The position numbers and the translations under genes were made by a program. The notes beneath the pieces were generated by a model. It was not told where the DNA came from and did not search any database. It saw only the letters and a list, made by a program, of their open reading frames with translations. From assembly GCF_020745735.1 (NCBI RefSeq), contig NC_083449.1:9398923-9462922 (forward strand): 64,000 nucleotides of DNA, written 5' to 3'. The stretch is from Hemiscyllium ocellatum. Its lineage: Eukaryota. This document shows positions 2,680 to 57,863 of the stretch, in pieces (positions within the stretch are counted from its first letter, which is position 1; the number at the start of each line of letters is the position of its first letter).

Positions 2680-3118
2680 CGCATGCGCGCCGCTGCCCCT
2701 TCCCCAAAGCTGACCATTTGTGCCTAGAGGAGCGCATGCGTGAGACCCTCCCCCAGCGCTGCCATTGAGGAGCATTTACTCAGTGAGTGCAAGAGGTTTG
2801 TTTGAAACTGACCGCAATGGAGAGATCAGCGCCCAGGGAAGCGAGGGAACAGCAGACTCTTTCCAGCAGCACATCGGGATGGGAGCCTGGGACACAGAGG
2901 GGGCTCCGAGACCGGGATTGATTCGGGGTGAGTTCAGGGAGAACCGGGGGCTGTTTGTAAGAGGCCGAGCGGAGCAGGACCTGGTCCCGGAACTTGGAGT
3001 GAGCGGGCTGGGGGGAAGAGAGAGGCCTTTCTCGGGCTGTGTGTGGGCCTGCTGAGGGAGGCAGAGCGGGAAGAAGCTGCTGTGGGACATTCTTGTGGTT
3101 TGCAATCCTCTAAACATT
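2680..3118 (+). promoter_or_regulatory. Conserved GC-rich promoter / putative first exon, copy 1 (donor GT at 2928)
   Basis: Two NRF1-like GCGCATGCG sites, YY1-like GCCATT, retained CpGs, GGG|GTGAGT donor; three near-identical copies in the window. Confidence 0.65.
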
Positions 3119-8000: not shown

Positions 8001-10100
8001 ACAAATTGGTAACTATGCTCTCTCATTGACCCAGCAGAAATTGACAGATGCAAACTGATAACTACACTGACACATTCACAGCACAAATTGACAGGAACAG
8101 GTTGACAACTATCCTCATTCATTCACGTAGCAGAAACAAACAGGTACAGATGATAACCACTACTTACCTATTCACAGAACAGAATGTTACAGTCATAAAT
8201 TGATAACTGGACTCATAACATGTACATTATGGAAACTGACATACATTTTGATAAAGGCATTCAGACATTGCCAAACCATATCAAAACACACACATACACA
8301 CACACACAAGAAACGCTCAGGGACAGGTTGGGAAATACACACACATATGCGCATCAATATGTCCATATTGATGACTATATTTGGATGTTCACAAAGCAAA
8401 GAGATTGATAACTGCATCATGTTCACAGAGCAGAATCTAACAGGTAGAGATTAATAACTATATTTCCATATGCACATTGTTGAAACTGACAGGTTTACAA
8501 ATTCATAACCTTATTCACAACACAGATACTAACAAGGAATGATTGTTATATGCACTCACATATTCACCAAGCAGAAACTGACTGGTACAGATTTATAACT
8601 AAACTCACATGTTGAAATAACAGGAACTGAAAGGTACAGACTGATAGCAACACTCTCATTCTCATAGCTCATACTGCCAGATATTGGTTGATACCTACAC
8701 TCTCATTCATATAGCAAAAACTGGCAGGTATAACTTAATTACTTCCTCGGATATATGAAGCAGACACTGACAGGGATAAATTACACTCTTCTAATCACAT
8801 AACAGAAAACCTCAGGTACAAAGTGATAAGAACACTTCCACTTTCACATAACATAAACTCGCCGATACAGTTTGATAAGTACAGTCAATTTCACACAGAA
8901 TCTGACAGGTAGAGATTGAAAACTGCGCTCTCATATTGACTTGGCAGGAACAGATAGGCATAGATTCAAACCTGTGCCCACATATTCACATTGACGAAAC
9001 TGACTGCTAAACTTCTGTATATGCAGAGAAAATTTTCTGACAAGTATAATTTGATAAAGACACTCAAATATTCATCGGGCAGAATATATGGATCACAACA
9101 CTGTCTCACTGAGCAGAAACTGACAGGGAAATGTTGATAAAACACTCACATATTCACATTACACTCACATATTCACATTGCAGAGACTGACAGGAAGAGT
9201 TGCTTTTGAATTTCTCATATTCACACAGCAGAATTGGTCAGGGATAGACTGACAATTTCACACAAGTATTCAGCCAGAAAAAACTGACAGGTATGGATTG
9301 GTAACTACATTTACAGATACACATACATTCTGACAGGGACAGATCAAAACTAAACTCTCTGGAAAACTCAAAGCAGAATATGACAGATACAGAATGATTA
9401 ATGCATTTACACATTCACAAATCCAAAAGTGACAGTTACAGATTAATAACTAAACACTCTGATTCAGAGAACAGAAACTAACGAGGAAAGGTTGATCAAT
9501 TCACTTTCACATTGCAAAGACAGACAGCAATAGATTGATAAATAAGCCACAGATACAGAGCAGAAACTGAACGGTGCAGATTGTAAAATACATACATGCA
9601 TGGACATAGCAGAAAGTGACATGACAGATTGATAATTACAGTCACACATTCTCATTGCAACAACTGACAGCGACACATTGATTGACAATCACTTGCCCAT
9701 TTCACAAAACTGACAGGTAGAGACTGAAAATGACAGTCACATTCACACAGCAGAATCTGACAGGCACAGCTGGATAACAGCACTCTCACATTCACATTGA
9801 TTAAAACTGACAGGTTTATGTTGATAAATGCATTCACCTATTAACAAACCACAGTCTCACAGGGACAGGTTATTACTGACATTCTCAGATTAACAGAACA
9901 AAATCTGACAGGGATAGGCTGGCCAATAAATTCACTCATTCACATTGTGAAGACTGACAAATACATACTAATAATTGTATTTTGATATTTACAAGTCGAG
10001 ATGGATAAATCCATTCAAATATTCATTCAGAAGCAATTGATAAATACATTTACATATCTACGAAACAGAGACTGACAGGAACAAACTGAGAAATACATTC
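5015..10100 (+). repeat. Degenerate ~47-49-bp minisatellite (consensus approximately CACATTCACANAGCAGAAACTGACAGGTACAGATTGATAACTACACT)
   Basis: CTGA core recurs at 5323, 5372, 5421, 5469, 5518, 5567, 5616. Further tracts at ~1040-1150, 1900-2030, 11090-11450, 13240-13700, 14720-14830, 23520-24000, 24740-25070, 25840-26040, 27430-27570, 29330-29490, 30240-30450 and 60050-60650. Confidence 0.85.
6606..6923 (-). mobile_element. tRNA-derived SINE (SacSINE1/Deu-domain-like); second partial copy at 23230-23450
   Basis: B-box-like GGTTCAAATCC on the minus strand; two homologous copies. Confidence 0.6.
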
Positions 10101-11195
10101 AGATTGCAGAAAAGGGCTCTCAGCTGCAGGGTTATGGGCTAGTTGCAGGAAGGTGGAATTAGAATGGCCATCTGGTGTCTTTGGGTTGGAATGGACATGA
10201 TATGACAAATGGACCTCTTATGTGCAATGTCATGTCAATGGATCTGTAGTTCTATGTTAATTTGTCCCTGTGAGTCACTGCTATGTGAATACATAAGTAA
10301 TTTCAGAAAGGCTTAGAAGGACAGAATGTGAGAGTGTGGTTGTCATTCACAAAGTAGGAATGTCAATGAATAGTTCAAAAACGAAACTGATTCCCAGTTC
10401 CACTTGCATTGGATAGCCCCATTCTTGGAGCTGTACCGTTATTGCTTAGTTTCTGGACCTCACTCAATTGGTATTGAATTAACAAAAAGAAAAATCACCA
10501 GACATGGATCAAGGGTAGAATCAGACATATTTGAATTCCTGGCTTTAAATACAATATCCTTATGATTATTAACAGAATGTTTCATTGATCAGTTAAAGAT
10601 GGTCAAACTTGGCTGATTGGGTGATTTACAGGAGATTTCTGTTCTGTCTTCTTCCAGGCAAATACTTGAAGGACCAAGACAATGTAATATTCCCTCGGTA
10701 CAAAGCCAGGTGTGACCAGCTGCTTTGAACAAACAGCAGGTATGTTACCGTTGTCAGAGCAAAGAACATACTTTGCACAGTCAAAGCAGATTGGATGAGC
10801 TACTCGTGGAGCTTAATTTGAGAGAGATGTTCAAACAACAGAGAAAATATAAGTTTGTTTTGTTTCTCACAATTCACAACGCAAATGTGTCCAGTTTGAA
10901 CAAATGTCACCATTCATAGCTCATTGACATTTGCACAATTTTGAAACTGGAAAGTCTGAATTCTTGTCCAAAACATACACACAAGAACGGAAACAAATAT
11001 ATCTAAAATAACCCTCATAGCAAGTATTGCATAATGAATCACACCCTCACAGAAAATATTCGTGGCTGCCAGAGAATTACGTCCCTTTGACAAATAGAAA
11101 CTGACAAGTATGCATTGATACCTCTGATCACTCGTTCAATTGGCAGAAACAGGCAAAACGACATTGATGATGACACACACATTGACAGGGCATTT

Positions 11196-11469: not shown

Positions 11470-13212
11470 TCGGTAGGTCCGATCAAGGACAGTAGTGGGA
11501 GACTGTGTATTGAGTCGGAAGAGATAGGAAAGGTCTTGAATGAGTACTTTTCTTCAGTATTTACGAACGAGAGGGACCGTATTGTTGAAGAGGACAGTCT
11601 GAAACGGACTGGTAAGCTAAAAGAGATACTTGTTAGGAAGGAAGATGTGTTGGACATTTTGAACAACTTGAGGATAGACAAGTCCCCCAGGCCTGACGGG
11701 ATATATCCTAGGATTATGTGGGAAGCAAGAGAGGAAGTTGCAGTACCGTTGGCAATGATCTTTTCGTCTTCACTGTCAACGGAGGTGGTACCAGGGGACT
11801 GGAGAGTAGCGAATGTTGTGCCCCTGTTCAAAAAAGGGAATATGGATAACCCCGGGAATTACAGGCCAGTTAGTCTTACTTCTGTGGTAGGCAAAGTAAT
11901 GGAAAGGGTACTGAGGGATAGGATTTATGAGTATCTGGAAAGACACTGCTTGATTAGGGACAGCCAGCATGGATTTGTGAAGGGTAGGTCTTGCCTTACA
12001 AGTCTTATTGAATTCTTTGAGGAGGTGACCAAGCATGTGGATGAGGGTAGAGCAGTGGATGTAGTAGTGTACATGGATTTTAGTAAGGCATTTGATAATG
12101 TTCCCCATGGTAGGCTTATACAGAAAGTCAGGAAGCATGGGATAGAGGGAAATTTGGCCAATTGGATAGAAAACTGGCTAACCGGTCAAAGTCAGAGAGT
12201 GGTGGTAGATGGTAAATATTCAGCCTGGAGTCCAGTTACAAGTGGAGTTCCGCAGGGATCAGTTCTGGGTCCTCTGCTGTTTGTAATTTTTATTAATGAC
12301 TTGGATGAGGGAGTCGAAGGGTGGGTCAGTAAATTTGCAGATGATACAAAGATTGGTGGAGTTGTGGACAGTGAGGAGGGCTGTTGTCGGCTGCAAAGGG
12401 ACTTAGATATGATGCAGAGCTGGGCTGAGGAGTGGCAGATGGAGTTCAACCCTGCCAAGTGTGAGGTTGTCCATTTTGGAAGAACAAATAAGAATGCGGA
12501 ATACAGGGTTAACAGGGTTCTTAGTCAGGTGGAGGAACAGAGGGATCTTGGGGTCTATGTACATAGATCTTTGAAAGTTGCCACTCAGGTGGATAGAGTT
12601 TGTAAGAAGGCCTCTGGTGTATTAGCGTTCATTAGCAAAGGGATTGAATTCAAGAGTCGTGAAGTGATGTTGCAGCTGTACAGGACTTTGGTTAGGCCAC
12701 ATTTGGAGTACTGTGTGCAGTTCTGGTCGCCTCACTATAGGAAAGATGTGGAAGCTTTGGAGAGGGTGCAGAGAAGATTTACCAGGATGTTGCCTGGAAT
12801 GGAGAATAGGTCGTATGAGGATAGGTTGAGGGTTCTCGGCCTTTTCTCGTTGGAACGGCGAAGGATGAGGGGTGACTTGATAGAGGTTTATAAGATGATC
12901 AGAGGAATAGATAGAGTAGACAGTCAGAAACTTTTTCCCCGGGTACAACAGAGTGTTACAAGGGGACATAAATTTAAGGTGAAGGGTGGAAGGTATAGGG
13001 GAGATGTCAGGGGTGGGTTCTTTATCCAGAGAGTGGTGGGGGCATGGAATGCGCTGCCCATGGGAGTGGTGGAGTCAGAATCATTGGCGACCTTTAAGCG
13101 GCAATTGGATAGGTACATGGATGGGTGCTTAATCTAGGTTAGATGTTCGGCACAACATCGTGGGCCGAAGGGCCTGTTCTGTGCTGTATTGTTCTATGTT
13201 CTATGTTCTATG
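11470..13212 (+). mobile_element. 5'-truncated CR1-clade (HER1-like) LINE, young, with uninterrupted RT frame 11536-13137
   Basis: KSPRPDGIYPR, NYRPVSLTS, DFSKAFD, GVPQGSVLGPLLF and FADDTK motifs; (GTTCTAT)n 3' tail. Confidence 0.93.
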
Positions 13213-13758
13213 ATATTTCAGATCAATAATCAAACTCAACCACTGTCAGGTAGAGACTGAAGGTCGCAGAGATTAAAAAAACTGACAGGTACGTTATGAT
13301 AACTAACATTACATTCATATATTGGAAACTAGCACGGAAAGATTGGTAAATACACTCACATTTTTACACAATAGTAACTATCCAAGAAAGATTAATAAGT
13401 GCACTGCCATATTCACAATGCAGAAACTGACAGGAACAAGTTGATAACACTCGAATTTCACAGAACATGAACTGACAGGTACAGTTTGATAACTATTCAA
13501 GAACAAAGTCTGACAACCATATATTGAGAATGACACTTTTACACTGAGCAGAAATTGACAGACACAGATTGATAACTAAACTCACATTCACACAGCAGAA
13601 ACTGAGAGGGTAGATTTATAACAACAGTCACGCGCTTGAATTGCAATAACTAACAGGGACACATTAATTACAACGTTTACATGATCATGTGACAAGAATG
13701 GATCGGTCAATAAATGAATTTTCGTATTCGCAATGCCGGAAATGAGAGATGGAGACTC

Positions 13759-16888: not shown

Positions 16889-17269
16889 ATGGCAGAGGAA
16901 AAGAAAGCGCAGCAACCCTCCAAGAAGGGCGCTAAGAAAGCGGTGAAGAGGGCGCCAGCGAAGGGCGCCAAGAAACGGAAAAGGTCCAGGAAAGAAAGTT
17001 ACTCCATCTACATCTACAAAGTGATGAAGCAGGTTCACCCTGACACCGGCATCTCTTCCAAGGCCATGAGCATCATGAACTCGTTCGTCAAAGATATTTT
17101 CGAGCGCATCGCGGGGGAGGCTTCCCGCCTGGCCCATTACAACAAGCGCAGCACCATCAGCTCCCGGGAGATCCAGACCGCCGTGCGGCTGCTGCTGCCC
17201 GGGGAGCTGGCCAAGCACGCCGTGTCGGAGGGCACAAAGGCGGTGACCAAGTACACCAGCTCCAAGTGA
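16889..17269 (+). CDS. H2B: Histone H2B (replication-dependent type), 126 aa; carries K at canonical N67
   Basis: ATG at 16889 (MAEEKK...). Canonical core [27 protein letters not shown]...TKYTSSK, intronless, with a downstream stem-loop. The ORF-track upstream GTG extension is not a eukaryotic start. Confidence 0.97.
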
Positions 17270-18264: not shown

Positions 18265-18687
<423 letters not shown>

Positions 18688-18731: not shown

Positions 18732-19429
18732 ACTCACAGCATCTGTGAAAGGAGCTCTCCCTTCCATCGGATTGAATTACCTTCCTGTGGCCACTTGTCT
18801 TGTACGTTATACTGTATTTAGGAAGAGCTGAATTGCCACTGTGCTGTAAGTTTTGAGTGGTCGCTGACCCTCTGTTTTATTGTGTTCGTGTGTAAGATCC
18901 TTTGCCTGGCCGTAGAGAGGGAGCATAATAGAAGCTACAGTCTCTTTCAGCTTCTTCCAGTTGTTTCAGTTCTTTAATAGTCAAATCAGTTCGGTAGCAA
19001 CACGCCCCCATGGGGTATGAGCCTGAGTTTGATCTCCGGCAAGCAGAACAAGTGCCCTCTCTTTGAATTCCACGGATAGATTCATTAACGCTTTTTAGAT
19101 TTCAGAATACCGATGGTGTTGTCTGATTGCAGAAGGCTCTGAAAGAGGTGGTTTGCTGTCAAAACTTTTAAAATGAAGAGGTCAAACCAGAGCAGTTGCC
19201 TCACTGTAAGAGTCGGTCAAGCAGCATAGATACAGACCCTATTGGTCCAACCAGACCATACCCACTATAATCTCAAACTAGACTAGTTCCAATTGCCTGT
19301 TCTTGTCCCATAACCCTTTGAAACTTTCCTTATCATGTACTTATCCAAATGCCTTTTAAATATTGTGACTGTATCCACGTCCATCACCTGCTTTGGAAGT
19401 TAATTCACACAAACCACATCAGCTCCCCA

Positions 19430-19822
19430 TATGAGCACATGCGTGAGGCCCCCACCCTTCACTGCTGCCATTGAGGAGCATTTACTCAGTGAGTGCAAGA
19501 GGTTTGTTTGAAACAGACCGCAATGGAGAGATCAGCGCCCAGGAAAGCGACGGAACAGCAGGCCCCTTCCAGCAGCACATCGGGATGGGAGCCTGGGACA
19601 CAGAGGGGGCTCCGAGACCGGGATTGATTCGGGGTGAGTTCAGGGAGAACCGGGGGCTGTTTGTAAGAGGCCGAGCGGAGCAGGAACTGGTCCCGGAATT
19701 TGGAGTGAGCGGGCTGGGGGGAAGAGAGAGGCCTTTCTCGGGCTGTGTGTGGGCCTGCTGAGGGAGGCAGAGCGGGAAGAAGCTGCTGTGGGACATTCTT
19801 GTGGTTTTTAATTCCCTAAATA
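19430..19822 (+). promoter_or_regulatory. Conserved GC-rich promoter / putative first exon, copy 2 (donor GT at 19634)
   Basis: Near-identical to 2725-3118; ~0.7 kb downstream of the H2A stem-loop. Confidence 0.65.
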
Positions 19823-22800
19823 CGGATGGAAATTTATTGTTTGGCTTCTGTTTCCTGCTATTTGTTGCGAATAGACATTGAATTGTTGGGAAATACAGGA
19901 GTTATCTAAATGTGACAGTAGTGCCCGTTGTTCGTTCTTCTACAGTTAGTGTATTGGGAGCTGAATATTGAACTGGGTAATCATTCTACTTATGAAACTA
20001 TGCAGATGTTGGTTAGTTTTTGTACCATAGTAAACTGTTTTAGAATTTCTCAAATAGAAAAACACTGGGAGGGGCGCAGTGCTGGAGCGTAGCCGGGCCT
20101 TGCTCTGTTCACCTTGCCCTGTTCAAAAACGAAGAATTGTCATGATCATCTGAATGTGGCATTGATCAATTGATGTCTTTCCTCTCAGCTGATGGTGATT
20201 TACAGGAGATATCTCTCTTGTCTTCCTCCAGGCAAATGATTGGACCAAGATAATGCACGTTCCCTCAGTACAAAGACAAGTGTGACCAGCTGCTTCTAAC
20301 AACTAACAGGTATGTTACTGTTGGATTGGAGAACGGCCTTTCCTCTGTGTGGATTGAGTCAGACACACCTTGAGCTGCATTTTCTAGAAGTACACGTTCA
20401 ACCCAAGAGTCAAACACAACTGATGAAATTTTTTTAAAAAATTTCACCCTGTACTAAACGCACAACAGATCAGTTTCAATATAAGTGCCATTATGCATAG
20501 TCTATTATCATTTGCAATATCAGAAGAGAGATAGACATTCAGGAACTGCATTAACTCGTAGTAAAGGCCATTTTAAAGTTACAATCAAGGTGAACAAACA
20601 GATCATGCTGTCACATTGTTACAGCAAGGATTTCTGAAGGAGATATTGAGTGCAGACATAGAATGAAATTTTGGCATTATCAATAACTGAGAAGGACATT
20701 GTTCTTGATAAATAGAAGTCCTATGCTAAAGGTACAACAATTAAACTGTGTAAATTCCAGATGAACCTCTGAGCCAAAACCTGATGTAGAGAGAATGCTG
20801 CCTACATCTATATACACATAGACAACCACCATCTCCAACCTGCCCTTCATGTCTGTGCTTGCATGCATATACACACACCATTCTCTCTGTTAATTGATTT
20901 TAAGTAGTTGCAAATTTGTACACCATCTTGAAATATGCATTCCAACATCTAACAGTAATGAAAATCCATATACACAGCAACTAGCAGAAAACATTACATC
21001 AAACTGATTTCTACTCTCATGTCAAGTCAAATATACAGCACCGAATAAGTCTCTTCAAATTATTAAACGTGACTAATCAAAGACAGTCCATAACAACATA
21101 ACAGTTGACTGAGCTAACTATTCTAATCTGTTTCAACCAGCATTCATTTTCCATAAAACAGAGAAGTTGTCATCCCCATGTGTATCGGAATGTGATTCTC
21201 CATTTCATTATTTTGTAGTTATTTTCTTTTTCTGCCAGCAAGAGCATTTTTTATTATTCTATATGTATTTCAAAATTCCTTTTGATTTTCTATGAAGAGC
21301 CCTGCATTCCTCTTGACACTCCCTTCATTATAGTACAAAAAAAAAGCAAGGAAGCAGGATATAGTTTTGTGAAGGAATCATTGGAATTGGATCATTATTT
21401 AAAGCATTGCTGGGTTGATATTTAAAGCAACAAGAGTTGATAAATTGTCAAATTCAAATTAATGAACCATTTAAATATTCTTTGCAGAATGGTGGAAAAT
21501 AAGTCCTTTTCATTTCCCCCTCCCTACTATAGAGCAACGCAAGAGTCTGCTAATGGCTTGCACCAGATCATGTCCATATGCGTAAGTAAAATAGAATTGG
21601 CCAATTCTCTTTCCTGTACAAGGAACACTGTGGTCAGTCAGCTGCAATGCAGTTGAAGTGTTCCCTTAGTTGCAAGTGGGTTTGGTTAATACTGATTATT
21701 AATTCATGGGTTAAAATGTCACTGTGCAAAAATTAATAGCATCCTGAAAACCAGACCTTGATATCCCCATTGTTCCCAGTTAGATGCTGCACTATAGGAG
21801 TTACAAAAGTCCATTGCTTTCAACTGTTGATTCTGAAGAAAAACCAGCAGCTTTTCTGCTGCAATGTGATGCATGCTCACCTGTCCATGGATCCTCTCAG
21901 CACTAAAGATAAAGAACATTGGTTGTGGACATTATCAAACTAAATGTGCAGTGCCAGAGATTAACAGATATACAAACACATCCACTTTCACTGACAGGAG
22001 TTGACTCCAGTGACAGTAGATAGTACCTCCTTCATGTCAAGTAGTAGAAGTTTGAACAATGGAAGTACTCTTGCAGTTCCTAAAAGGGACGTGTTTCAAT
22101 TTGAATGACACGGAAGCACTGTGAAACGCAATAACCAAGTATAAGGAGCTCATTGATATCTAGTATCAGAGAGTGAATGAAACCCATTCTCACACTGAGC
22201 CTGGTGCTGATGAACACACACTTTCTCCACACTCATTCCAGTTGAGGGACTGAGTAATGCAGAAGTATTTCCATACTTTTTAATACATGAAACACTGATT
22301 TATAAGGTGTTAAACCTACCTCATAAAATGTATCAGATCATGACCTGCAGAACGGGAAACAAGGCAACATTCAAAAAGTGTCAGTGTGATATAGACCAAT
22401 GCCATTCCTTTAAAGTGATACAGATTGGCAGCACAACAGAAAACTCACTCTCACACAGCCAGTTAATGCTGAAAGGGGAAAAAAAAATGGAATTTAGGCC
22501 CAGGTATTTACCAATATGGACAGTTATAAATTGATTCACCAAACCATTAATTACTTCAGTTAGTGTCTGATGTTACATCTTGCAGTATCCAGCAGCAACT
22601 GATAACGACTCCTGCAAACACAACATATTAAAAAAAAAAGTCTGAATGGAATAAATTTCAGATTCATGGCAAAGATAAATATTAAGAGCTGAAAATGTGT
22701 TGCTGGTTAAAGCACAGCAGGTCAGGCGGCATCCAAGGAACAGGAAATTCGACGTTTCGGGCCAGAGCCCTCCTTCATGAATGAGCTGAATGAGAAAGAT

Positions 22801-23999
22801 AAATATTAAACCAATATTAATCACTCAATCACAAAAGGTTAGTGAATATTGAGAGTTTATCCTGTGCTCAGACCAAAAAAACACAACTGAACATGGAAAG
22901 AGAATGAGATCCACATACTCTACCTGGTGTTGTTGCATACAAACAAAACTGGCACGATAGTTATCAAAGACAGGTAACTACAGAAATAATCTCTAATTTG
23001 CATTTAGATAGAGATACAGGCAGTGAGTGGATAAAGTTCAGAATCCCAACAGTTAGTTGAAACTCTTTTGGAGAACAGGTGAAGAACAGACTGGGCTGAA
23101 TGGCTGTACCAATTCTGTGACTCTGTCATAAATGACATGATGCAGAAGAGATTCAGGCCCAATCACAACACCCGAAAATCAACTATCACAGAATCAATTT
23201 CAGTCACCAACAATTCTGTTTCCTAAATTCATTCATGGGGTGAGGGCATCACTGGCTAGGCCAGCATTTATTGCCCATCCCTAACTGCCCAGGGGGTAGT
23301 TATGTGTCAGCCACATTGCTGTGGGTCTGGAGACACATGTCGGCTAGACCAGGTAAGGATGGCAGCTTCCTTCCTTAAAGGACATTAGTGAACCAGATGG
23401 GTTTTTCAGGCAAGCAAGAATAGATCCGTTGTCATCATTGGACTCTTAGAATATTATTGGCTGTCAGCAAATTAAGCAACTGTGCCTGAGAGTTGAAAGT
23501 GGCTGGTACTGATTGAGCACTTGACTCAGTCACACAGCACAAACTGATGAGGACAGAGATTCCTGAACTCTCATGTGGACACAACGGGAACTGACAGGTA
23601 TAGATTGATAGCTGCTCTCACATATTCACTCTGCAGAAACTGAAAGAGAGAGCATGATACTTAAACACACACCACTCCCCGCATGTACTTTACAAACACT
23701 GGCAGGTACAATCTGATAAATGCATTTGCACATTTATAAACTAGACGTTGACAGATACGGATTCATAGTTACATCCTGAGATACACAGAGCAGAATATAA
23801 CAGGGACAGATTGAACAATCACACTCATTTGCACATGACAGGACATTTCAGAGGATGACTGAAAACTGCATTCTCATTCACAAAGCAGAGACTGACAGGA
23901 GCAGATTGATACCACTCTCTGTTTCAAATTACTTGTATGGTTTGCTAATGACACTGGCATATTTACGGGAGAAACTGACAGGTTGAGATTGATGACAAA

Positions 24000-24732
24000 A
24001 GAAATCTGAGTTACATTTGGAGGTCTAGTGACCCTTCCTCAGAGCTGATTGTCTGCATTTTCCTAGCTGCTGTGTGGTCTTCTGTATTCTGGGGAAACAG
24101 AGTGTAGATTGGGTGTCCACAATGCAGAGCACCTATATTCTGTCCAGAAAAAAAAGACTCTGAGCTTCCAATTGCCTGCCACTTCAACACACCACCCTGT
24201 TCCCTGGCCAACATCTCTGTCTCAGACTTGCTGTATTGCTCCAGTGAAGCTCAGTGCAAGCTGGAAGAACTGCACCTCATTTTCTGCTTGGGAACTCGAC
24301 AGCCTTCTGCACTCGATATTGGGTTCAACGCCTTTAGAACCAGAGCTCTCCCGTGTCATTACCCGAATTCCCCCACACCTGGCAGTGTTATCACATAGTA
24401 TACTATTATACACCAACAATTACTAACAGTCCTTATTAACAGCTATTCATCCTCCTCGTCTGACCGTGATCCACTCCTTTGTCTGTGCAACTGTTCTTCC
24501 CTGTCTATGGATTCTATCTCCATATATCATTTACTCCATACCCTTCAACACACCCTATCTTCTGCACAGAAACTAATATTTTCCTGGCTACCATCAGTTC
24601 TCAGGAAGGGTTACTTGATTGGAAATTTTTATGTCTAATTTTCTCCACAAGCTCTATCAGACCTGCTGAGCTTTTCCAGCAATTTAGTTTTGTTTCTGAT
24701 TTCCAGCATTTGCAGTTCTTTTGTTTTTTATT
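24000..24732 (+). mobile_element. Penelope-like element family 4, 3' fragment with inverted 5' piece
   Basis: LPIACHFNTPPCSLANISV...KLEELHLIFCLGTRQP (GIY-YIG C-terminal); decayed hammerheads at ~24007-24047(-) and ~24597-24635(+). Confidence 0.65.
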
Positions 24733-26041
24733 TAGAGATTAAGAACTACATTTTCACGTTCTCAGAGCAGAAACTATCGGAAAAAATTGATAACCACATC
24801 CATATGTTCACAAAAGAACTTCTAGATTCAAGTGGTGCTGGAAAAGCACAGCTCGTCAGGCAGCATCTAAGGAGCAGGAAAATTGATGCTTTGGGCAAAA
24901 GCCCTTCGACAAATATTGATAAATACACTCACATTTTATTACAGAGCCTGATGGGGAAGGAACCTAATTAAATCATCACAAAGCAGGGTTGTGACAGGGA
25001 CTGTGAAGAACTAAATCCTCACATTCACAAATCAGAAACTGGCAGTCTTAGATTGACAATTACCTAAACACAGCAGGTCAGGCAGCATCTGAGGAGCAGG
25101 AAAATCAACATTTTTGGCAAAAAACCCTTCATCAGAATGGGCTTTTGCCTGAAACGTTGATTTTCCTGCTCCTTGGATGCTCCCTGATCTGTGCTTTTCC
25201 AGCACCACTCTGATCTCAACTCTGGTTTCCAGCATCTGCAGTCCTCACTTTTGCCTAATTACCTAATCATATTCACCAAGCAGATTTCATCAGCAGGCTA
25301 AGGAAAAATTCAGCATGTCTACAAAGACTCTTCCAAATCATCCCACAGAAAGCATCTTATCTGGGTGTATTGCAGTGTGGTATGGCTACTGTGCTGCCCA
25401 AGACCACAAGAAACTGCAGAGAGTGTGAACACGGCTCTGTCCATCACAGAAACCAACCATCCATCCAATGACTGCATTTCCACCTCCCCCCTGACTCGGG
25501 TAAGCAACCAACATAATCAAAGACCAATCTGACCCTGGTTATACTCTCCTCCACCCTCTTCTGTCAGGGAGAAAACACCTGAAGTTTGAATACACCATCA
25601 AACAGATTCAAGAACAGTTTCCCTGCTGTCATCAGACTTTTGAGTGGACCACTCAAATTTTAATGTTAATTTCTCTCTCTCTCTCTGCACCTTCTCTGCA
25701 GCATTAACACTATATTCCGGATTCTGTTCTATTACCCTGATGCACTTTGTACAATATGATCTGCCTGTAAAGCGCACAGATCAATACTTTTCATTGCAAC
25801 TCGTGCATGTGCCAATAACAAGTCAGATCAAATCAAGTAGATAACTACAGCCTCATTCAACAGAATCTGAGAATTACATGTTGACAACTACAATCACAAA
25901 AACTGACAGGAAAAGATGAATAAATACACTGAAATATCGGCATTTCAGACCCTGACATGGAAAGATTGATAACTTGAACTCTCACATTCACAAGACTGAA
26001 ACTGACAGTGACAGATGGAAACTCAGCTCACACATTCTCTT

Positions 26042-27423
26042 CAAAGCACAGCAGGCCAGGCAGCATCTCAGGAATAGAGAATTCGACGTTTCGAGCATAA
26101 GCCCTTCATCAGGAATAAGAGAGAGAGAGCCAAGCAGGCTAAGATAAAAGGTAGGGAGGAGGGACTAGGGGGAGGGGCGATGGAGGTGGGATAGGTGGAA
26201 GGAGGTCAAGGTGAGGGTGATAGGCCGGAGTGGGGTGGGGGCGGAGAGGTCAGGAAGAGGATTGCAGGTTAGGAGGGCGGTGCTGAGTTGAGGGAACCGA
26301 CTGAGACAAGGTGGGGGGAGGGGAAATGAGGAAACTGGAGAAATCTGAATTCATACCTTGTGGTTGGAGGGTTTCCAGGCGGAAGATGAGGCGCTCCTCC
26401 TCCAGCCGTCGTGTAGTTGTGTTCTGCCGGTGGAGGAGTCCAAGGACCTGCATGTCCTCGGTGGAGTGGGAGGGGGAGTTAAAGTGTTGAGCCACGGGGT
26501 GATTGGGTTGGTTGGTTCGGGCGGCTGGAGGCTTCGGATTTGTTGTAGGTACAGGTTGTCCTGGTTGGGTCCAAATTTTGTTGGTTGGAATGTAGTTCGG
26601 AGTCCGTGTGGGATCAGTCGGTTCCTTAGGCAGGTGCTGAGGAAGGAGATGTGGCTGTGGTGGCTGAAGAGCTTCTGTGCAGAGGAGATGACCTGGGGGG
26701 TGCAGTGAGAGAGAGACTTACTGAAATCCTTGTAGAGGGAGGAAGAGAGCTTCTTCAAGGAAGGCATCCTTGCAAGAGGATTTGCAGTAGGTTAAAATCT
26801 TCGAGTAAAAAATGAGGTCTGCAGATGCTGGAGATCACAGCTGCAAATGTGTTGCTGGTCAAAGCACAGCAGGCCAGGCAGCATCTCAGGAATAGAGAAT
26901 TCGATGTTTTGAGCATAAGCCCTTCATCAGGAATAAGAGAGAGAGAGCCAAGCAGGCTAAGATAAAAGGTAGGGAGGAGGGACTAGGGGGAGGGGCGATG
27001 GAGGTGGGATAGGTGGAAGGAGGTCAAGGTGAGGGTGATAGGCCGGAGTGGGGTGGGGGCGGAGAGGTCAGGAAGAGGATTGCAGGTTAGGAGGGCGGTG
27101 CTGAGTTGAGGGAACCGACTGAGACAAGGTGGGGGGAGGGGAAATGTGGAAACTTTCCTGACCTCTCCGCCCCCACCCCACTCCGGCCTATCACCCTCAC
27201 CTTGACCTCCTTCCACCTATCCCACCTCCATCGCCCCTCCCCCTAGTCCCTCCTCCCTACCTTTTATCTTAGCCTGCTTGGCTCTCTCTCTCTTATTCCT
27301 GATGAAGGGCTTATGCTCGAAACGTCGAATTCTCTATTCCTGAGATGCTGCCTGGCCTGCTGTGCTTTGACCAGCAACACATTTGCAGCTGTGATCTCCA
27401 GCATCTGCAGACCTCATTTTTTA
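26042..27423 (-). mobile_element. Internally deleted Penelope-like element: two direct pLTRs plus one inverted pLTR, N-terminal fragment fused to GIY-YIG C-terminus, 15-bp flanking duplication
   Basis: HISFLSTCLRNRLIPHGL (N-terminal) and AQHFNSPSHS...EEERLIFRLETLQPQGMN (endonuclease C-terminal). Hammerheads at 26081-26116(-), 26899-26934(-) and 27295-27330(+). CTCACACATTCTCTT at 26027-26041 and 27424-27438. Confidence 0.85.
27295..27330 (+). ncRNA. Minimal hammerhead ribozyme (family 1), intact core
   Basis: ATTC CTGATGA A GGGC TTAT GCTC GAAA CG TC GAAT. Confidence 0.8.
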
Positions 27424-27574
27424 CTCACACATTCTCTTTGCAGGGATAGATTGACAATTACACAAACCTATTCAGCGAGCAGAAACTGACAGCTACAGAT
27501 TGTTAACTATCTCTATCTATGTATTCACACGGCAGAGTCTGAAAGGTACAGATTGACAATTATACTCACTTTGA

Positions 27575-29328
27575 CAAGGAGGAAATAAAGATCAGCAAGG
27601 CGGCCTTTGTGCGGAGCAGGAGAAAATTGGGGCGATACTAAATAAGTATTTTGCATCAGTATTTACTGTGGAAAAGGATATGGAAGATATAGACTGTAGG
27701 GAAATAGATGGTGACATCTTGCAAAATTTCCAGATTATAGAGGATGAAGTGCTGGATGCCTTGAAATGGGTAAAGGTGGATAAATCCCCAGGACCTGATC
27801 AGGTGTTCCTGAGAACTCTGGAAAGCAAGAGAAGTTATTGCTAGGCCTCTTGCTGAGATATTTGTATCATCAGTAGTCACAGGTGAGGTGCCGGAAGACG
27901 GGAGGTTGGCAAACGTGGTGCCACTGTTTAAGAAGGGCGGTAAGGACAAGCCAGGGAACTATAAACCAGTGAGCCTGACCTCAGTGATGGGCAAGTTGTT
28001 GGAGGGAATCCTGAGGGGACAGGCTGTACATGTATTTGGAAAGGCAAGGACTGATTCGGGATAGTCAACACGGCTTCGTGCGTGGGAAATCATGTCTCAC
28101 AAACTTGATTGAGTTTTTTGAGCAAGTAACAAAGAGGATTGATGAGGGCAAAGCAGTAGATGTGATCTATATGGACTTCAGTAAGGCTTTTGATAAGGTT
28201 CCCCATGGGAGACTGATCAGCAAGGTTAGATCTCATGGAATACAGGAAGAACTAGCCATTTGGATACAGAACTGGCTCAAAGGTAGAAGACAGAGGGTGG
28301 TGTTGGAGGGTTGTTTTTCAGACTGGAGGCCTGTGACCAGTGGGGTGCCACAAGGATTGGTGCTGGGTCCTCTACGTTTTGTCATTTACACAAATGATTT
28401 GGATGCAAGCATAAGAGGTACAGTTAGTAAGTTTGCAGATGACACCAAAATTGGAGGTGTAGTGGACAGCGAAGAGTGTTACGTCAGATTACAACAGGAT
28501 CTTGACCAGATGGGCCAATGAGCTGAGAAGTGGCAGATGGAGTTTAATTCAGATAAATGCGAGGTGCTGCATTTTGGGAAAGAAAATCTTATCAGGACTT
28601 ATCAACTTAATGGTAAGGTCCTAGGGAGTGTTGTTGAACAAAGTGCAGGTCATAGCTCCTTGAAAATTGAGTCGCAGGTAGATAGGATAGTGAAGAAGGC
28701 GTTTGGTATGCTTTCCTTTATTGGTCAGAGTATTGAGTACAGGATTTGGGAGGTCATTTGCAGCTGTACAGGACATTGGTTAGGCCACTGTTGGATTATT
28801 GCATGCAATTCTGGTCTCCTTTCTATCAGAAAGATGTCGTGAAACTTGAAAGGGTTCAGAAAAGATTTACAAGGATGTTGCCAGGGTTGGAGGATTTGAG
28901 CTATAGGGAGAGGCTGAACAGGCTGGGGCTGTTTTCCCTGGTGCATCGGAGGTTGAGGGATGAACTTACAGAGGTTTACAAATTACGAGGGACATGGATA
29001 GGGTACATAGGCAAAGTCTATGGGGTGGGGAGTCCAGAACTAGAGGGCATAGGTTTAGGGTGAGAGGGGAAAGATATAAAAGAGACCAAAGGTGCAACAT
29101 TTTCATACAAGAGGGTGGTATGTGTATGGAATGATCTGCCAGAGTTGTGGTAGAGGCTGGTACAATTGCAACATTTAAGAGGCATTTGGATGGATATATG
29201 AATAGGAAGGTTTGGAGGGATATGAGCCGGGTGCTGGCAGGTGGGACTAGATTGGGTTGGGATATCTGGTCGGCATGGACGATTTTGACTGAAGTGTCTG
29301 TTCCATGCTGTACATCTCTATGACTCTA
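27575..29328 (+). mobile_element. CR1-clade LINE, 5'-truncated, frameshifted
   Basis: RT motifs in ORFs 28030-28521 and 28537-29063; CTCTATGACTCTA tail. Confidence 0.9.
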
Positions 29329-29498
29329 GGTACAGAATAATAACTGTACTCCCACATTCACATCGCTGAAACTGATGGATACAGTTTGATTAATACATCC
29401 ATATTCATAGAACATAATCTGATGTGTACTGATCAATAACTATATTTGCATACTGACAGGGTCGGATTCCTACCTACACTCTCATCTTGACCTATTAG

Positions 29499-30234
29499 TG
29501 TTATGACACAGTGATAAATCCCTCTGCTAATTAAACCAGACACAGAAAAGCTCACCTCGCTTAATAATCTGTTAAAATGAGTGACAGAGAAAGACCCAAA
29601 TTCCAGTATCTAACAAGAGCATCAATTATATTCTTTAATGCTGAAAGTGAACATTAAACAACAACTATTTACAACACTCCGCCTCCTTTCGCTTGAAGAT
29701 TTGTTATCTACCTCCCACTCTTTAACAATATGCTGATTCAATAAACCCCCTATTAAATTTATAGCAACTTAATTTTCAAAACCATTGGGGGCTGTCATCC
29801 CCAACGTCGATCTTCCTCTGTTTGTAAATCTCTCAGGGTCATCTTTGGTCTTTGGCTGCAAAGATGTTTCATATGAAAATGGTACCTTTGATCGAGAGTG
29901 TTGTGAATAACAGTCTTTCAATGGAAGTTCATTCTTTTTTCTGGCCAATTGTCCAAAAGGCATCCTTTTGTGTTAATACCCCAAGCATCAGATCATCTCC
30001 TTGGTTTGATAATGTCAAAACAGTAAAATACCAATTCAATTGGATTTTAGTAGCTTGAGGCATAATTTAAATGGATTGGTTAAATGTGAAATACGAACGA
30101 AGGTATCTAGGTAACAGCCAAATGGTACATCTTTCAATTTTCCACCACACTCTGTGACTGCTAGTCAGTCACAAGACAGGTGCTTACCAGCTTTCTCTCT
30201 TAAAGGTACAGTACATACCTTCAACTTCATAACA
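29499..30234. mobile_element. Solo LTR (probably Gypsy type)
   Basis: TGTTATGA...TCATAACA termini, flanked by TTAG/ATAG (4-bp TSD, one mismatch); interrupts the minisatellite. Confidence 0.7.
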
Positions 30235-30736
30235 ATAGAAACAGTTTGATCACGATGCTCAGGTGTCAAATAGCAAAACCTGATAGCAGTGTATGGTATT
30301 TGCACTCCGATATTGATATAGCTAAAACTGACAGGTAGAGATCAATATGTACAATCACATGGAAGAAACTGAAGGGTACAAATTGATGCGTGCATGTTTA
30401 TAGTCAGGCAGCCGGAACTGACAGTTATAGATAGATAAGTAAGCTCTCATATCTAGACATGCACTCGCATCAGGTAGTCCCATGTGTGGCGCTGGAGAGG
30501 TATTGGTTAGGATCTGGGTCTCGGTGAATTGGTATAGATTTTGTTTTTTGTTATAATGACCAGACAAAGAGCAGCTGAGGCCAAGAATAGAATCAGCTCT
30601 GAGGTTCTGTTGGAATTACTGGCTTGAAAGAAAAACAGCCTAATGATTATTAAATAAATATTACATTGAAAGGTTTGATACTGTCAAACACACGTAATGT
30701 TGAGTTATAGGAGATGTCTCCTCTCTCTTCCTTCAG

Positions 30737-30818
30737 ATAAATGCTTGAAGGACCAAGAGAATGTAATATTATCTCGGTATGGAGTCAAGTGTGATCGGTT
30801 CCTTCTGACGAACAGCAG
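30737..30818 (+). other. Putative 82-nt internal exon 'A', best-preserved copy (paralogues 3615-3696, 10658-10739, 20232-20309, 45311-45390, 52797-52878)
   Basis: Polypyrimidine CTCTCTCTTCCTTCAG acceptor and CAG|GTAAGT donor; six paralogous copies with largely retained splice signals. Confidence 0.55.
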
Positions 30819-31007
30819 GTAAGTTACCATTCTCCGACTGAAGGGCAGCCTTTCCGTAGTCACAGAGCAGTTTGAATTGAGCTCAATTTCCAGAGAGGAA
30901 TTTTCAAACCAGGAATCAAATATTACCAAGCAATTACAATTTTTTTTTACCCCTCTCCATTCTCAATGCACATCACCCTAATTCCATAGATTTTAACATT
31001 CACAGCC

Positions 31008-33120
31008 ATAGAGTCACAGAGATGAACAACACAGAAACAGACCCTTTGGTCTGAATTATCCATGCCAACCAAATATTTGCCAGAACTTGGCCCATATCCC
31101 TCTAAACCCATCCTATTCATATACCCATCCAGATGCCTTTTAAGTTTGTAATTAACCCAGCATTCAACACTTACTCTGGCAGCTCATTCCATACACACAC
31201 CACCTTAAACGTGAAGAGGTTGCCCCTTTTAAATTTTTCCACTTTCCCCTTTCACCTTACACCTATGCCCTCTAGTTTTGGACTCACCCACCCCAGGGAA
31301 AAGACATTGTCTATTAATCCTATCCATGCCCCTCATGGTTTTATAAACCCACAATAAAGTCACCCTGCAGCCTCCAATGCTCCTGGGAAACAGCCTCTTT
31401 ATTCAGCCTCTCCCTATATCTCAAATCCTCCAACCCTGGCAAGGTCTTTGTAAATCTTTTCTGAACTCTTTCAAGTTTCACAGTATCACAGTATAGAAGG
31501 GAGACCAGAATTGTATGCAGTATTCCAAAAATGGCCTAAACCATGATCTGTACAGCTACAACATGACCTCTCAACTTCTACACTCAATGCTCTGACCAAT
31601 AAAGGAAAACATACTAAATGTTTCTTTACTATCCTATCTACCCGCGACTCCACTTTCATGGAACTATCGACCTGTATTTCAAGGTTTATTTCTTCAGCAA
31701 CATTCCCCACAACCTCACCATGAAGTGTATAAGTCTTCCTCTGGTTTGCTTTTCCTAAATGCAGCACCTCACATTGATCTGAATTAAACTCTATCTGCCA
31801 GTCTTCAGCCCATTGGTCCATCTGATCCAGATCCTGTTGTACTCTGAAGTAACCTTCTTTGCTGTCCACCTCCAATTTTGGTGCAATCTGCAAACCTACT
31901 AACTATACTTCCTGTGTTCACATCCAAATCATTTTCATAAATGATGAAAAGCTGTGGACTCAGCACTGATCCTTGTAACAGACCACTGTTCACAGGTCTT
32001 CGGTCTGAAAAGCAACCCTCCACCACCATCCTCTGTCTTCTACTCTTCAAGCCAGTTCTGTTTTCAAATGGCTAGTTCTTCCTGATCTAATCTTGCTAAC
32101 CAGTCTACCATGAGGAACTTTGTCAGACGCCTTACTGAAGCCCATAAAGATCAAGTCTACCGGTCTGCCCTCATGAATCCTCTTTGTTACTCCTACAAAA
32201 AACTCAATCAAATTAGTGAGATATGATTTGCCCCACACACAACCATGTTGCCTTTCCCTAATCAGTCTTTGCCTTTCCAAATACATATAAATTCTGTCCC
32301 TCAGGATTCCCTGCAACAGCTTGCCCACCATCAATGTCAGGATAACCAGCCTATAGTTCCCTGGCTTGTCCTTGCCACCTTTCTTAAATCGTGGAACCAC
32401 ATTAGCCACCCTCCAGTCTTCCAGCACCCCACCTGTGACTATCGATGATACAAAAATCTCAGCAAGGGGCCCAGCAATCACTTCCCTAGTTTCCCACCGA
32501 GTTCTCGAATGCACCTGATCAGGTCCTGGGGAGTTAACGCGTTTGCGTTTTAAGACATCCAACACCACCACCTCAGTAATATGGACATTTCTCAAGATGT
32601 TACTATCCATTTCCCCACATTCTGTATTCTCCATGTGCTTCTCCACAATAAACACTGATGCAAGATAGTCATTTCTTATCTCTCCCATCTCCTGCGGTTC
32701 CACACATAGGCTGCCTTGCAAATCTTTGAGGTGCCTCATTTTCACCCTAGTTATCATTTTGTCCTTAATGTATTTCTAGACTTCCTTAGGATTCTCCTTA
32801 ACTCTATTTGCCAAATATATCTCATGACCCCTTTTTTGCCTTCTTGATTTCTCTCTTAAAGATACGCCAACTGCCTTTGTACTTTCCTAAGGATTCACTC
32901 TATCTTTGCTGTCTATACCTGACATATGCTGCCTTCATTTTCTTGACCATAACTTCAACTTCTCTCATCATCCAGCATTGCCTACACCTACCAGGCTTTC
33001 CTTTCACCCTCTCTGGATTCTTGTTATCTCATTTTTGAGAGCTACTTATTTTCCAGCCGTCCCTTTACCTGTGAATATCCACCCCCAATGAACATTTGAA
33101 AGTTCTTGCATAATACCTTC
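31008..33120 (-). mobile_element. CR1-clade LINE, degenerate
   Basis: ORFs 32047-32757 and 31486-32050 with CR1 RT motifs. Confidence 0.88.
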
Positions 33121-34299
33121 AAGCCCATTGACATTGACACCATTTTCCAAGACTGTTACTCTGAATTCTTGTCTGAAATGCACACTTGGGAATGACATTG
33201 AATCTACAGTGAATGACATTTTTAAAATTAAAAGCAAGATGGGGAAAAAAGTCAGTCTGTAACATAATTTCAAAAACCATACATAACATCCATGTTAAAT
33301 GTAGACATACGAGGAAACTAAACAAAAGTCACCAATTTACAGGATGAAACAGTTATTGAATTTATTAGTGATTGGGCGGGACAGAATTAATCCTTTAATA
33401 CAGCTGTCATATTAAAAAATGTGAATTCCAAACACATTCTGTGCCAAAGCCTGGCAAATAAAACTGTAAATGACAGAAACCAGAAACAAAGTAATAATTG
33501 CTGGAAAAACTCAGCACATCTGGCAACATCTGTTGAGAGAAAGCAGAGTTAAAGCTTTGTGACCAGTGATTGTTGTTCAGAACGGAGTTTCTCCAGGAAT
33601 CTATGTCTTTGTTCCTGACAAATGGAGAATAATTACTACAGACACACAGCAACTGACTCATTCAGAACTTGTCTGAAATGCTAGCATCATAACTACAGAC
33701 AATGACTAACGGTTATGGAATTCCATATATACTGCAGGCAACAGAAAAAGATTACAATCAAAATGAATTTCACTCTCATGAATTCATTGTGGTCTGCAGC
33801 AGTCAGAAACATCCAGCTAACAATTCTACTCCCATTCAGACAGCATTCCATTTCCATAAATGTATCATGGTGGCACAGGAGCTGCCATCCCCACCTTTAT
33901 CACAATATCATTTTCCATTTCTCCAAATTGCAGGAACAGATTTTCTTTTTAACTCTACCTGCATCAAAAAGACGTCTCATGCATTTGTTTCAAACGAAAT
34001 TAAATTTTCGACATATAATCCTGTGTTCCACTTGACCCTCCCTCTGAAGTCTGATGTAAAACGCAAGAAAACTTGGTGCCATTTTCTCAAATGTTCAATG
34101 TGATCACATAATCATATTTTGAAACAGTGGAGTAGGAAAGATTTAGTGAGATAAGGCAGATAGGTAAAGATGCTCAAATTTCTTTTTGCGACAGGAGTTC
34201 AAGAGTTTCATTCTTCAATAAATTTACTTTGACCGTTCCAATTTCCTCCACTGCACGAGAGAAAATCAAAGTCCTTCTGCCTTCCTCCTCCCCTGATAG

Positions 34300-34350
34300 A
34301 ACCACACATGTATCCCAATGATGGTGAGCACCATCACAATACAGAGCAGG
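34300..34350 (+). other. Putative ~50-nt exon 'B' (paralogues 4653-4703, 21533-~21565, 58548-58596)
   Basis: Long pyrimidine tract + ATAG acceptor and CAGG|GTAATG donor; four copies. Confidence 0.45.
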
Positions 34351-40940: not shown

Positions 40941-41321
40941 ATGGCTGATGAGAAAAAAGGACAGCAAGCATCCAAGAAGGGCGCGAAGAAAATCATCAAG
41001 AAAGCGCCAGCGAAGGGCGGCAGAAAGAGGAAAAGGTCCAGGAAAGAAAGTTACTCCATCTACATCTACAAAGTGATGAAGCAGGTTCACCCCGACACCG
41101 GCATCTCCTCCAAGGCCATGAGCATCATGAACTCGTTCGTTAACGATATTTTCGAGCGCATCGCGGGGGAGGCTTCCCGCCTGGCCCATTACAACAAGCG
41201 CAGCACCATCAGCTCCCGGGAGATCCAGACCGCCGTGCGGCTGCTGCTGCCCGGGGAGCTGGCCAAGCACGCCGTGTCGGAGGGCACAAAAGCGGTGACC
41301 AAGTACACCAGCTCCAAGTGA
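40941..41321 (+). CDS. H2B: Histone H2B, 126 aa
   Basis: MADEKK... with canonical core including FVNDIFER; intronless. Confidence 0.97.
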
Positions 41322-43312: not shown

Positions 43313-43662
<350 letters not shown>

Positions 43663-44317
43663 AGAGACCATTCTTGAATCCGACAATCTTAAAGGCTCTT
43701 TTAAGAGCCACTCACATCTATGAAAGAAACTTCCCTCCGTCAGATTGAATAACCTTCCTTTAATTATTTATCGGGCTCAGTCCCTTCCATGTTCGATACT
43801 GTACTATCATTGGATGTATGTGATCTACTGTAAAACCTTTCTTGATGGCTGTGAGACAAGTGTGAAATATATACCGGTATTGTAACAATGGTGAGAGTGC
43901 ACCTCACCCTAGCTCCAAACGTCCAGCTCAGCACTGTCCCCATGACTTGTCCTACCTGCCTGTCTCCTTTTCCACCTATCACCTTCATCCCTTCCCCCAC
44001 TCACCTATTGTACTCCATGCTACTTTCTCCCCAGCCCCCACCCTCCTCTAGCTTATCTCTCCACGCTTCAGGCTCTCTGCCTTTATTCCTAATGAAGGGC
44101 TTTTGCCCGAAACGTCGACTTTGCTGCTCCTTGGATGCTGCCTGAACTGCTGTGCTCTTCCAGCACCACTAATCCAAAATCTGGTTTCCAGCATCTGCAG
44201 TCATTGTTTTTACCTGACTGACAGAGTGAGAGGCGGGTCCGGAGAGCAAACTGAGTGAGCAGGGAAATTACTTTGTTCATCCTGCTCTCTCCAGCCCCAA
44301 CTGTATCTGGGACTGAA

Positions 44318-44712
44318 CCTTTTCTCCCCAAAGCTGATTGTTCCTGACCAGAGGAGCGCATGCGTGAGGCCCTCCCCCAGCGCTGCCATTGAGGAGCATT
44401 TACTCAGTGAGTGCAAGAGGTTTGTTTGAAACAGACCGCAATGGAGAGATCAGCGCCCAGGGAAGCGAGGGAACAGCAGGCTCCTTCCAGCAGCACATCG
44501 GGATGGGAGCCTGGGACACAGAGGGGGCTCCGAGACCGAGATTGATTCGGGGTGAGTTCAGGGAGAACCGGGGGCTGTTTGTAAGAGGCCGAGCGGAGCA
44601 GGAACTGGGGGGGTGGTGTGGAAAAGAGAGAGGCCTTTCTCGGGCTGTGTGTGGGCCTGCTGAGGGAGACAGAGCGGGAAGAAGCTACTATGGGACATTT
44701 TTGTGGTTTACA
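44318..44712 (+). promoter_or_regulatory. Conserved GC-rich promoter / putative first exon, copy 3 (donor GT at 44552)
   Basis: Near-identical to copies 1 and 2; ~0.6 kb downstream of the H2A pseudogene stem-loop. Confidence 0.65.
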
Positions 44713-53169: not shown

Positions 53170-53204
53170 TACTAGCTTTCAGAGTGCTGCTCCTTCATCA
53201 GGTA
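53170..53204 (-). ncRNA. Minimal hammerhead ribozyme (family 2)
   Basis: TAC CTGATGA A GGAGC AGC ACTCT GAAA GC TA GTA. The copy at 41655-41689 has a CAC/GTG stem I and a GGAGC/GCTTC stem II. Confidence 0.7.

Positions 53205-57822: not shown

Positions 57823-57823
<1 letters not shown>

Positions 57824-57861
<38 letters not shown>
57824..57861 (+). repeat. (CA)n microsatellite
   Basis: Direct inspection. Confidence 0.95.

Positions 57862-57863
<2 letters not shown>

Follow-up and report, generated by a model that had tools for sequence, protein, structure and literature searches.

A candidate multi-copy, spliced and most likely non-coding gene in the histone spacers of the epaulette shark

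An important question raised by the histone genes of the epaulette shark, Hemiscyllium ocellatum, is what the DNA between them is for. We analysed a stretch of 64,000 nucleotides (nt) of contig NC_083449.1 (positions 9,398,923 to 9,462,922 of the forward strand; referred to here as the window) from the genome whose assembly GCA_020745735.1 represents the paternal haplotype of this species (PMC10587355). In three units of this window, a previous interpretation of the letters alone (the sequence-only reading) had recognized a GC-rich block ending in a putative splice donor, here called E1, followed by dispersed small exons A, B and C. It had proposed that these form an unannotated birth-and-death gene family, duplicated together with the H2B–H2A pair and possibly encoding a microprotein of about 50 amino acids (aa), with a long non-coding RNA (lncRNA) or the decaying 5' region of a larger gene as fallbacks. 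Is there, then, a second gene in the histone spacers, and does it encode a protein? As detailed below, the repeated blocks seem best explained as a multi-copy, spliced, most likely non-coding gene, an interpretation to which we assign a probability of roughly 0.6. It is supported by the gene-like behaviour of the blocks, i.e. a promoter-like first exon and small exons flanked by splice sites, which appear to have been duplicated together with the histone spacers.

Gene-like blocks and their conservation

Self-comparison of the window recovered the GC-rich block, the first part of which ends in GGG/GTGAGT, in three plus-strand copies of about 370 bp (2730-3160, 19433-19867 and 44325-44714), which are 89-93% identical overall and near-identical in their core. 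Each of them holds ATGGGAGCC...ATTCGGG followed by GTGAGT, and the segment from the proposed start codon to this donor is the same in all three units except for one G>A in unit 3. With the open reading frame (ORF) across E1 as the query, three proteins of Chiloscyllium punctatum were found, and an exhaustive search with one of these (P0001) yielded further entries; the C. punctatum scaffolds BEZZ01002789 and BEZZ01002770 are referred to as L001 and L005, respectively. Over 353 aligned core positions, the five copies of E1 compared (three from the window, two from C. punctatum) show 94-96% identity in all ten pairs, with not a single column that separates the two species. Because identity within and between species is equal, this star-like pattern points to selection acting on each copy rather than to species-specific homogenisation. 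With 94% identity the E1 cores are near the level of the H2B coding sequence (CDS; 93.2% identical between units 2 and 3); the flanks of E1 can barely be aligned between paralogues, and outside the blocks the C. punctatum loci are 79-87% identical to the window. The donor GTGAGT is invariant in the five full copies.

Several properties of E1 agree with a plus-strand promoter and are the signatures expected at the start of a lncRNA gene: a GC content of 60%, a CpG observed-to-expected ratio (o/e) of about 0.5 as compared to 0.33 for the entire window, an NRF1-like motif (GCGCATGCG) at the 5' edge and a GC skew that changes from -0.25 to +0.49 across 19450-19800, with the switch located at about 19450-19500.

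Downstream of E1, BLAST with the consensus of the 82-nt exon A confirmed the six copies of the sequence-only reading (at 3615, 10658, 20232, 30737, 45311 and 52797; E 1e-9 to 1e-36), all in the same order and on the plus strand, and found no minus-strand copy in the window. Most of these copies are preceded by a pyrimidine tract plus AG and followed by GTATGT or GTAAGT. Among the six paralogues, the exon (76% identity), its acceptor (76%) and its donor (81%) are kept above the flanks (56-61%), in keeping with selection, now or in the past, for an exon that is spliced; the canonical splice sites, i.e. the donor of E1 and both acceptor and donor of exon A, are maintained beyond a neutral level. 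Between species, it is the copy at 52797 that stands out: it is identical to three C. punctatum copies at 79-80 of 82 positions (96-98% vs 81-93% in the flanks) and is the only exon A copy better conserved across species than its surroundings. Yet the donor of just this copy is mutated to AT in the window. The list of stops, frameshifts and lost splice sites previously given for the individual copies proved correct on re-checking (table 1), and the birth-and-death pattern is borne out.

All four copies of the approximately 50-nt exon B were found as well (table 1), and the one at 58548 shares 45 of 50 positions with C. punctatum vs 85-87% identity in its flanks. Further downstream there are several collinear islands, none of which could be equated with the proposed 37-nt exon C. 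One island, a candidate terminal exon at 59020-59096, is identical to C. punctatum at 74 of 77 positions (96%), compared to about 88% in the flanks. The small paralogous exons are thus real as blocks. Similarity is not confined to them: entire A-to-B segments are collinear old segmental duplications (e.g. 20183-23194 with 52747-60002).

Table 1. Positions of the repeated blocks and of related features in the window.
Feature	Position	Strand	Remarks
E1, unit 1	2730-3097	+	self-comparison
E1, unit 2, promoter-like first-exon block	19436-19803	+	GC 60%, CpG o/e 0.52
E1, unit 3	44348-44715	+	17-nt deletion in variable linker
Upstream ORF, 34 codons, overlapping the proposed start	19523-19627	+	GCAATGG context, other frame; further starts at 2817 and 44441
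Proposed start codon to donor, MGAWDTEGAPRPGLIR plus 1 nt, then GTGAGT	19585-19633	+	equivalents at 2879-2927 and 44503-44551
Exon A proximal, unit 1	3615-3694	+	donor deleted, acceptor shifted
Exon A distal, unit 1	10658-10739	+	splice sites intact, in-frame TGA
Exon A proximal, unit 2	20232-20309	+	78 nt, frameshifted with stops, splice sites kept
Exon A distal, unit 2	30737-30818	+	only window copy that combines an open frame with both AG acceptor and GT donor
Exon A proximal, unit 3	45311-45390	+	80 nt, frameshift and stop
Exon A distal, unit 3	52797-52878	+	frame open, donor GT>AT
Exon B, unit 1	4653-4701	+	AG and GT both lost
Exon B proximal, unit 2	21533-21581	+	internal deletion; end coordinate tentative
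Exon B distal, unit 2	34300-34348	+	AG acceptor, G/GTAATG donor; TGA at 34319-34321 ends the proposed ORF
Exon B, unit 3	58548-58596	+	both splice sites intact
Conserved island downstream of B, candidate terminal exon	59020-59096	+	followed by AATAAA; paralogue at 22419-22500

Are these blocks ever joined to each other? In the epaulette shark itself the family is indeed unannotated, with the gene table of GCA_020745735.1 showing no plus-strand protein gene at these sites. In C. punctatum, however, MGAWDTEGAPRPGLIR is the N-terminus of three annotated proteins (P0004, P0001 and P0002). The model P0001 (chiPu_0020654), located on BEZZ01002789, connects E1 (L001 3179-3295) to a distal exon A (10800-10881) and skips a proximal one (at about 3864). 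As a modelled junction this is exactly the one predicted for the window (19633 to 30737), where the damaged proximal copy would have to be left out for the E1 donor to reach the distal exon A in the frame proposed. In P0002, E1 is followed by the proximal A, reached via an upstream AG and in another frame, and P0004, i.e. the RefSeq entry XP_072422816.1 ("uncharacterized protein isoform X2"), consists of MGAWDTEGAPRPGLIR, A, a second copy A' and a further exon. Its gene covers 21.1 kb between H2A and H2B, and the protein starts at the same ATG as the path proposed for the window. Two independent annotations, RefSeq and that deposited in GenBank in 2018, thus connect the E1 donor to copies of exon A. 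Gnomon models without protein homologues, as well as alternative isoforms, normally require transcript evidence in the NCBI pipeline. The same E1 first exon, donor and exon A family also occur in chiPu_0022556, chiPu_0020637, chiPu_0018755, chiPu_0018757, chiPu_0020992 and chiPu_0022751. Like the units of the window, the C. punctatum entries are located between H2A and H2B; they differ in being annotated as proteins, with ORFs that disagree with each other after E1.

From these models of a related species, together with the sequence signals described above, we infer transcription, splicing and the start site in H. ocellatum. That the blocks represent the 5' part of a larger gene found no support, as the gene in RefSeq does not extend as far as the next H2B. 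A search for such a gene with P0001 (phmmer) returned small C. punctatum hypothetical proteins and a few weak matches to long proteins near E=1e-4, which were taken as spurious.

Coding potential of the proposed spliced path

If the units are transcribed and spliced, they could encode a small protein of about 50-90 aa, possibly N-myristoylated, which would run from the E1 ATG through exon A, just as the C. punctatum gene is labelled in RefSeq. Some of our data go along with this possibility. The ATG in E1, with a G at both -3 and +4, does not vary among six copies from two species, the phase of E1 leads into the one frame of exon A that is open, and this very frame was picked by both RefSeq and the 2018 annotation. 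Also, dN/dS (the ratio of non-synonymous to synonymous substitution rates) is 0.3-0.4 for some pairs of paralogues. The 50-aa path (19585-19633 + 30737-30818 + 34300-34321) does translate as the sequence-only reading had it, and its N-terminal MGAWDT fits the N-myristoylation pattern. The loose form of this pattern is G-{EDRKHPFYW}-x(2)-[STAGCN]-{P}, and such a match carries little information.

What decides the matter is how the sequence evolves. Among the three units of the window, just one offers an intact 50-aa path, and in the closest cross-species pair of precisely this path, i.e. exon A at 30737 and its C. punctatum counterpart, 17 of 82 nt and 12 of 26 residues differ, dN/dS is 1.07 and the identity of the exon (65 of 82 positions, 79%) equals that of the flanks (79%). 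The well-conserved 52797 type shows two to three changes relative to C. punctatum, all of them non-synonymous and none synonymous. Minimum changes in exon A at codon positions 1, 2 and 3 are 14, 22 and 26, respectively, i.e. position 2 is about as variable as position 3 and codon periodicity is absent. Of nine copies, four keep the frame open, and in five it is broken. A dN/dS of about 1 together with such loss of the frame contradicts the coding claim, and neither ORF preservation among orthologues and paralogues nor purifying selection on the peptide, in the form of a low dN/dS and an excess of third-position changes, could be found.

The C-termini of P0001, P0002, P0004 and the proposed path are all unrelated, with nothing in common after E1 and exon A, and the model P0012 even uses a different frame for each of three A copies in a row, as expected when exons of 82 nt, which is not a multiple of three, are strung together. 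Moreover, the overlapping upstream ATG that had been noted before is present at 19523; in strong context, it opens a reading frame that overlaps the proposed start. Pfam gave no match for four peptides, and protein searches covering 1.84 billion representatives revealed no relative outside the small C. punctatum hypothetical proteins.

E1 by itself does not behave like coding sequence either. Its indels are 17, 1 and 1 nt long and break every frame, and its private substitutions in the frame beginning with MGAWD are almost all non-synonymous, which is why we regard E1, as far as its pattern of change can tell, as not coding; parts of E1 outside this ORF are equally conserved. Two other ORFs were considered and rejected: a minus-strand ORF of 104 aa in E1, which has no homologues and no exact record and is subject to the same indels that are not multiples of three, and a plus-strand unspliced ORF through E1, in which the few differences are nearly all non-synonymous and which is broken by the 17-nt deletion of unit 3.

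Taken together, the evolutionary pattern renders the microprotein unlikely and the broader small-protein interpretation improbable. The lack of coding constraint makes the lncRNA fallback the better of the two readings, in line with the finding of neither a conserved ORF nor protein homologues. Small ORF (smORF) genes hidden in lncRNAs resemble the shark units in having a short ORF, a good start context and a (here predicted) spliced transcript. Such genes are, however, known by their conserved ORF and low dN/dS, and in the shark units both were tested for and neither was found.

Alternatives without splicing and points against a spliced gene

The strongest competing interpretation takes E1 for a stand-alone element with a regulatory or architectural function as DNA, or for the source of a short unspliced RNA of about 370 nt. 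A and B would then be what is left of an old gene and would no longer be spliced, and the models in C. punctatum would be artefacts. Such a reading would account for conservation that takes no notice of the donor and for the presence of the 'intronic' part of E1 in RNA-like sequencing runs. The following observations speak for it or against a spliced gene. First, E1 is evenly conserved across the proposed donor, which is unusual for a simple first exon: the E1 of unit 2 is 93% identical to L001 before the start codon (19471-19584), 100% from there to the donor (19585-19633) and still 97.6% over the 170 nt after it (+1 to +170), so E1 may have another primary role. Second, sequencing runs of other organisms that share part of 19430-20330 (with shares of about 0.2) mostly hold the E1 block including its 'intronic' portion. 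For one of them, X2, the share of 0.67 for 19637-19840 corresponds to about 12 of roughly 20 shared words. Among the runs holding sequence from 19430-20330, none is on record as RNA. What they contain is DNA or unspliced RNA rather than a spliced form, and an explanation of the shares of about 0.2 by spliced exons was discarded, as they stem mostly from conserved E1 sequence, on both sides of the donor. Third, the majority of the window's exon A copies carry damage, and three copies of the exon diverge between the species just like their flanks: the intact one at 30737 and those at 20232 (exon 88%, flanks 86%) and 45311 (exon 83%, flanks 85-91%). Fourth, gene models can be prediction artefacts, and the 50-kb locus L005 of C. 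punctatum holds six copies of A but no E1. Finally, some or all units of the window may be dead, because only one of them retains a fully spliceable path.

On the other hand, an isolated E1 does not account for exon A, its acceptor and its donor being kept above the flanks among old paralogues and, for the 52797 type, between species. Also, the E1 donor was used independently by two annotation pipelines, and conservation after the donor is weaker in unit 3 (88% identity to C. punctatum). A structured RNA receives no support from Rfam, which gave no match for 19350-19900 up to E=10, or from folding, in which E1 was no more stable than shuffled sequence (z-scores of the minimum free energy of 0.23 and 0.12); a tRNA scan detected no tRNA. 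On balance we consider a stand-alone E1 unlikely but far from negligible.

In L005, the plus-strand copies of exon A are found at 10233, 18261, 21927, 38576 and 40731, and there is also one partial minus-strand match. As E1 is missing from these 50 kb, copies of exon A outnumber promoters there. Three of the L005 copies are strung together, in three frames, by the model chiPu_0020637.

Could the blocks be pieces of a transposable element or another selfish repeat with splice-like motifs? The window is full of copies of long and short interspersed elements (LINE, SINE) and satellites, and exon A is multi-copy both here and in C. punctatum. Yet E1, A and B recur in the same order, on the same strand and at similar distances from one unit to the next, and units 2 and 3 both have E1 in the equivalent position behind H2A. 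The copies are extended collinear duplications rather than discrete insertions with unrelated flanks, and the A-B segments carry no ORF of the transposon type. Judged from layout and ORF content, discrete copies with unrelated flanks, element termini and transposon proteins are not what is seen, and this origin appears very improbable.

As to the mobile and repetitive DNA itself, a LINE reverse transcriptase ORF of 533 aa (11536-13137) looks intact, and decayed relatives of it are located at 27587-29328 and, on the minus strand, at 31009-32897 and 46566-48183. Satellite-like arrays with a period of about 49 bp and a consensus around ...CAGAAACTGACAGGTACAGATTGATAAC... extend over 5053-10007, 13259-13631, 23586-23911 and 60188-60531 and occupy much of the spacer of unit 1.

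A proposed transcription unit in the histone repeat

How would a spliced, non-coding gene be organized within the histone cluster? The window contains two pairs of plus-strand H2B and H2A genes (16889-17269 with 18298-18687, spaced by 1,029 nt, and 40941-41321 with 43323-43662), and Rfam identifies histone 3' stem-loops downstream of both H2A copies. The claim that the family was duplicated together with the H2B–H2A pair therefore stands for units 2 and 3, whereas it fails for unit 1, where the 2.7 kb of window DNA upstream are free of histone genes. Unit 3 carries an H2A pseudogene, which has lost 22, 2 and 26 nt in three deletions. Where it aligns with the intact H2A, the two are still about 97% identical, and its 3' stem-loop (43689-43733) has been retained; this suggests recent decay or gene conversion. 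On the opposite strand, the annotation of GCA_020745735.1 contains a 328-aa model (window about 6889-51321) with histone-fold Pfam matches. It covers both 20-kb loci that were looked up and thus extends over more than 44 kb of the cluster; this model is probably a chimera of distant histone genes.

For the repeated blocks we propose that each spacer of the histone repeat would hold one copy of a spliced transcription unit of RNA polymerase II. E1 would combine a CpG-rich promoter, the first exon and the start of the first intron, with transcription proceeding on the plus strand, and would be kept almost unchanged by purifying selection. Its donor would be joined to at least one copy of the 82-nt cassette exon A, followed by small downstream exons, i.e. 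B and a terminal exon. Copies of A would have multiplied by segmental duplication and would decay one by one. Since 82 is not a multiple of three, each added copy of A shifts the frame, and short ORFs, including the 50-aa path, would therefore be mere by-products. E1 itself may have taken part in rearrangements of the repeat. L001 2669-3531 and 3099-7642 align to window 2246-3160 and 19433-24154, respectively, i.e. on BEZZ01002789 the DNA upstream of E1 resembles unit 1 and that downstream resembles unit 2, which suggests that E1 was a past site of exchange between repeat units.

In several respects such a unit would resemble vertebrate lncRNA genes with their conserved promoter and first exon and fast-evolving downstream exons: it has a constrained CpG-rich block, canonical splice sites and small exons and lacks a conserved ORF. 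It differs in being multi-copy and repeated with each histone spacer, and its transcription is a prediction; moreover, with about 370 bp conserved at about 95% across old paralogues, the constraint on E1 goes far beyond that of usual lncRNA promoters. Tandem histone repeats with co-repeated non-histone elements offer another parallel, as E1 is kept about as well as the histone CDS. In contrast to such elements, however, the copies of E1 are equally similar within and between species, which gives the star-like pattern rather than that of species-specific homogenisation.

What could such a unit be good for? No description of the element was found in the literature, and a cis role in the chromatin of the spacer between histone genes is a guess on our part. 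A more far-reaching proposal would be that E1 is a functional element of hemiscylliid shark histone clusters, about 370 bp long and conserved like a histone CDS in every repeat across several megabases, whose transcript, or the act of transcription, organizes or regulates the histone locus, and which would make the units a histone-locus-specific family of non-coding RNAs; this we put forward tentatively and consider rather doubtful at present. For the databases, the "uncharacterized" or "hypothetical protein" entries of this family in C. punctatum, in RefSeq as well as in GenBank, are probably non-coding. If the units are transcribed, each shark histone repeat would contain a second, non-histone gene, whose start region is as constrained as a histone CDS. 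This gene would then be a new candidate component for the biology of the histone locus and, at the same time, a clear case of the birth and death of cassette exons.

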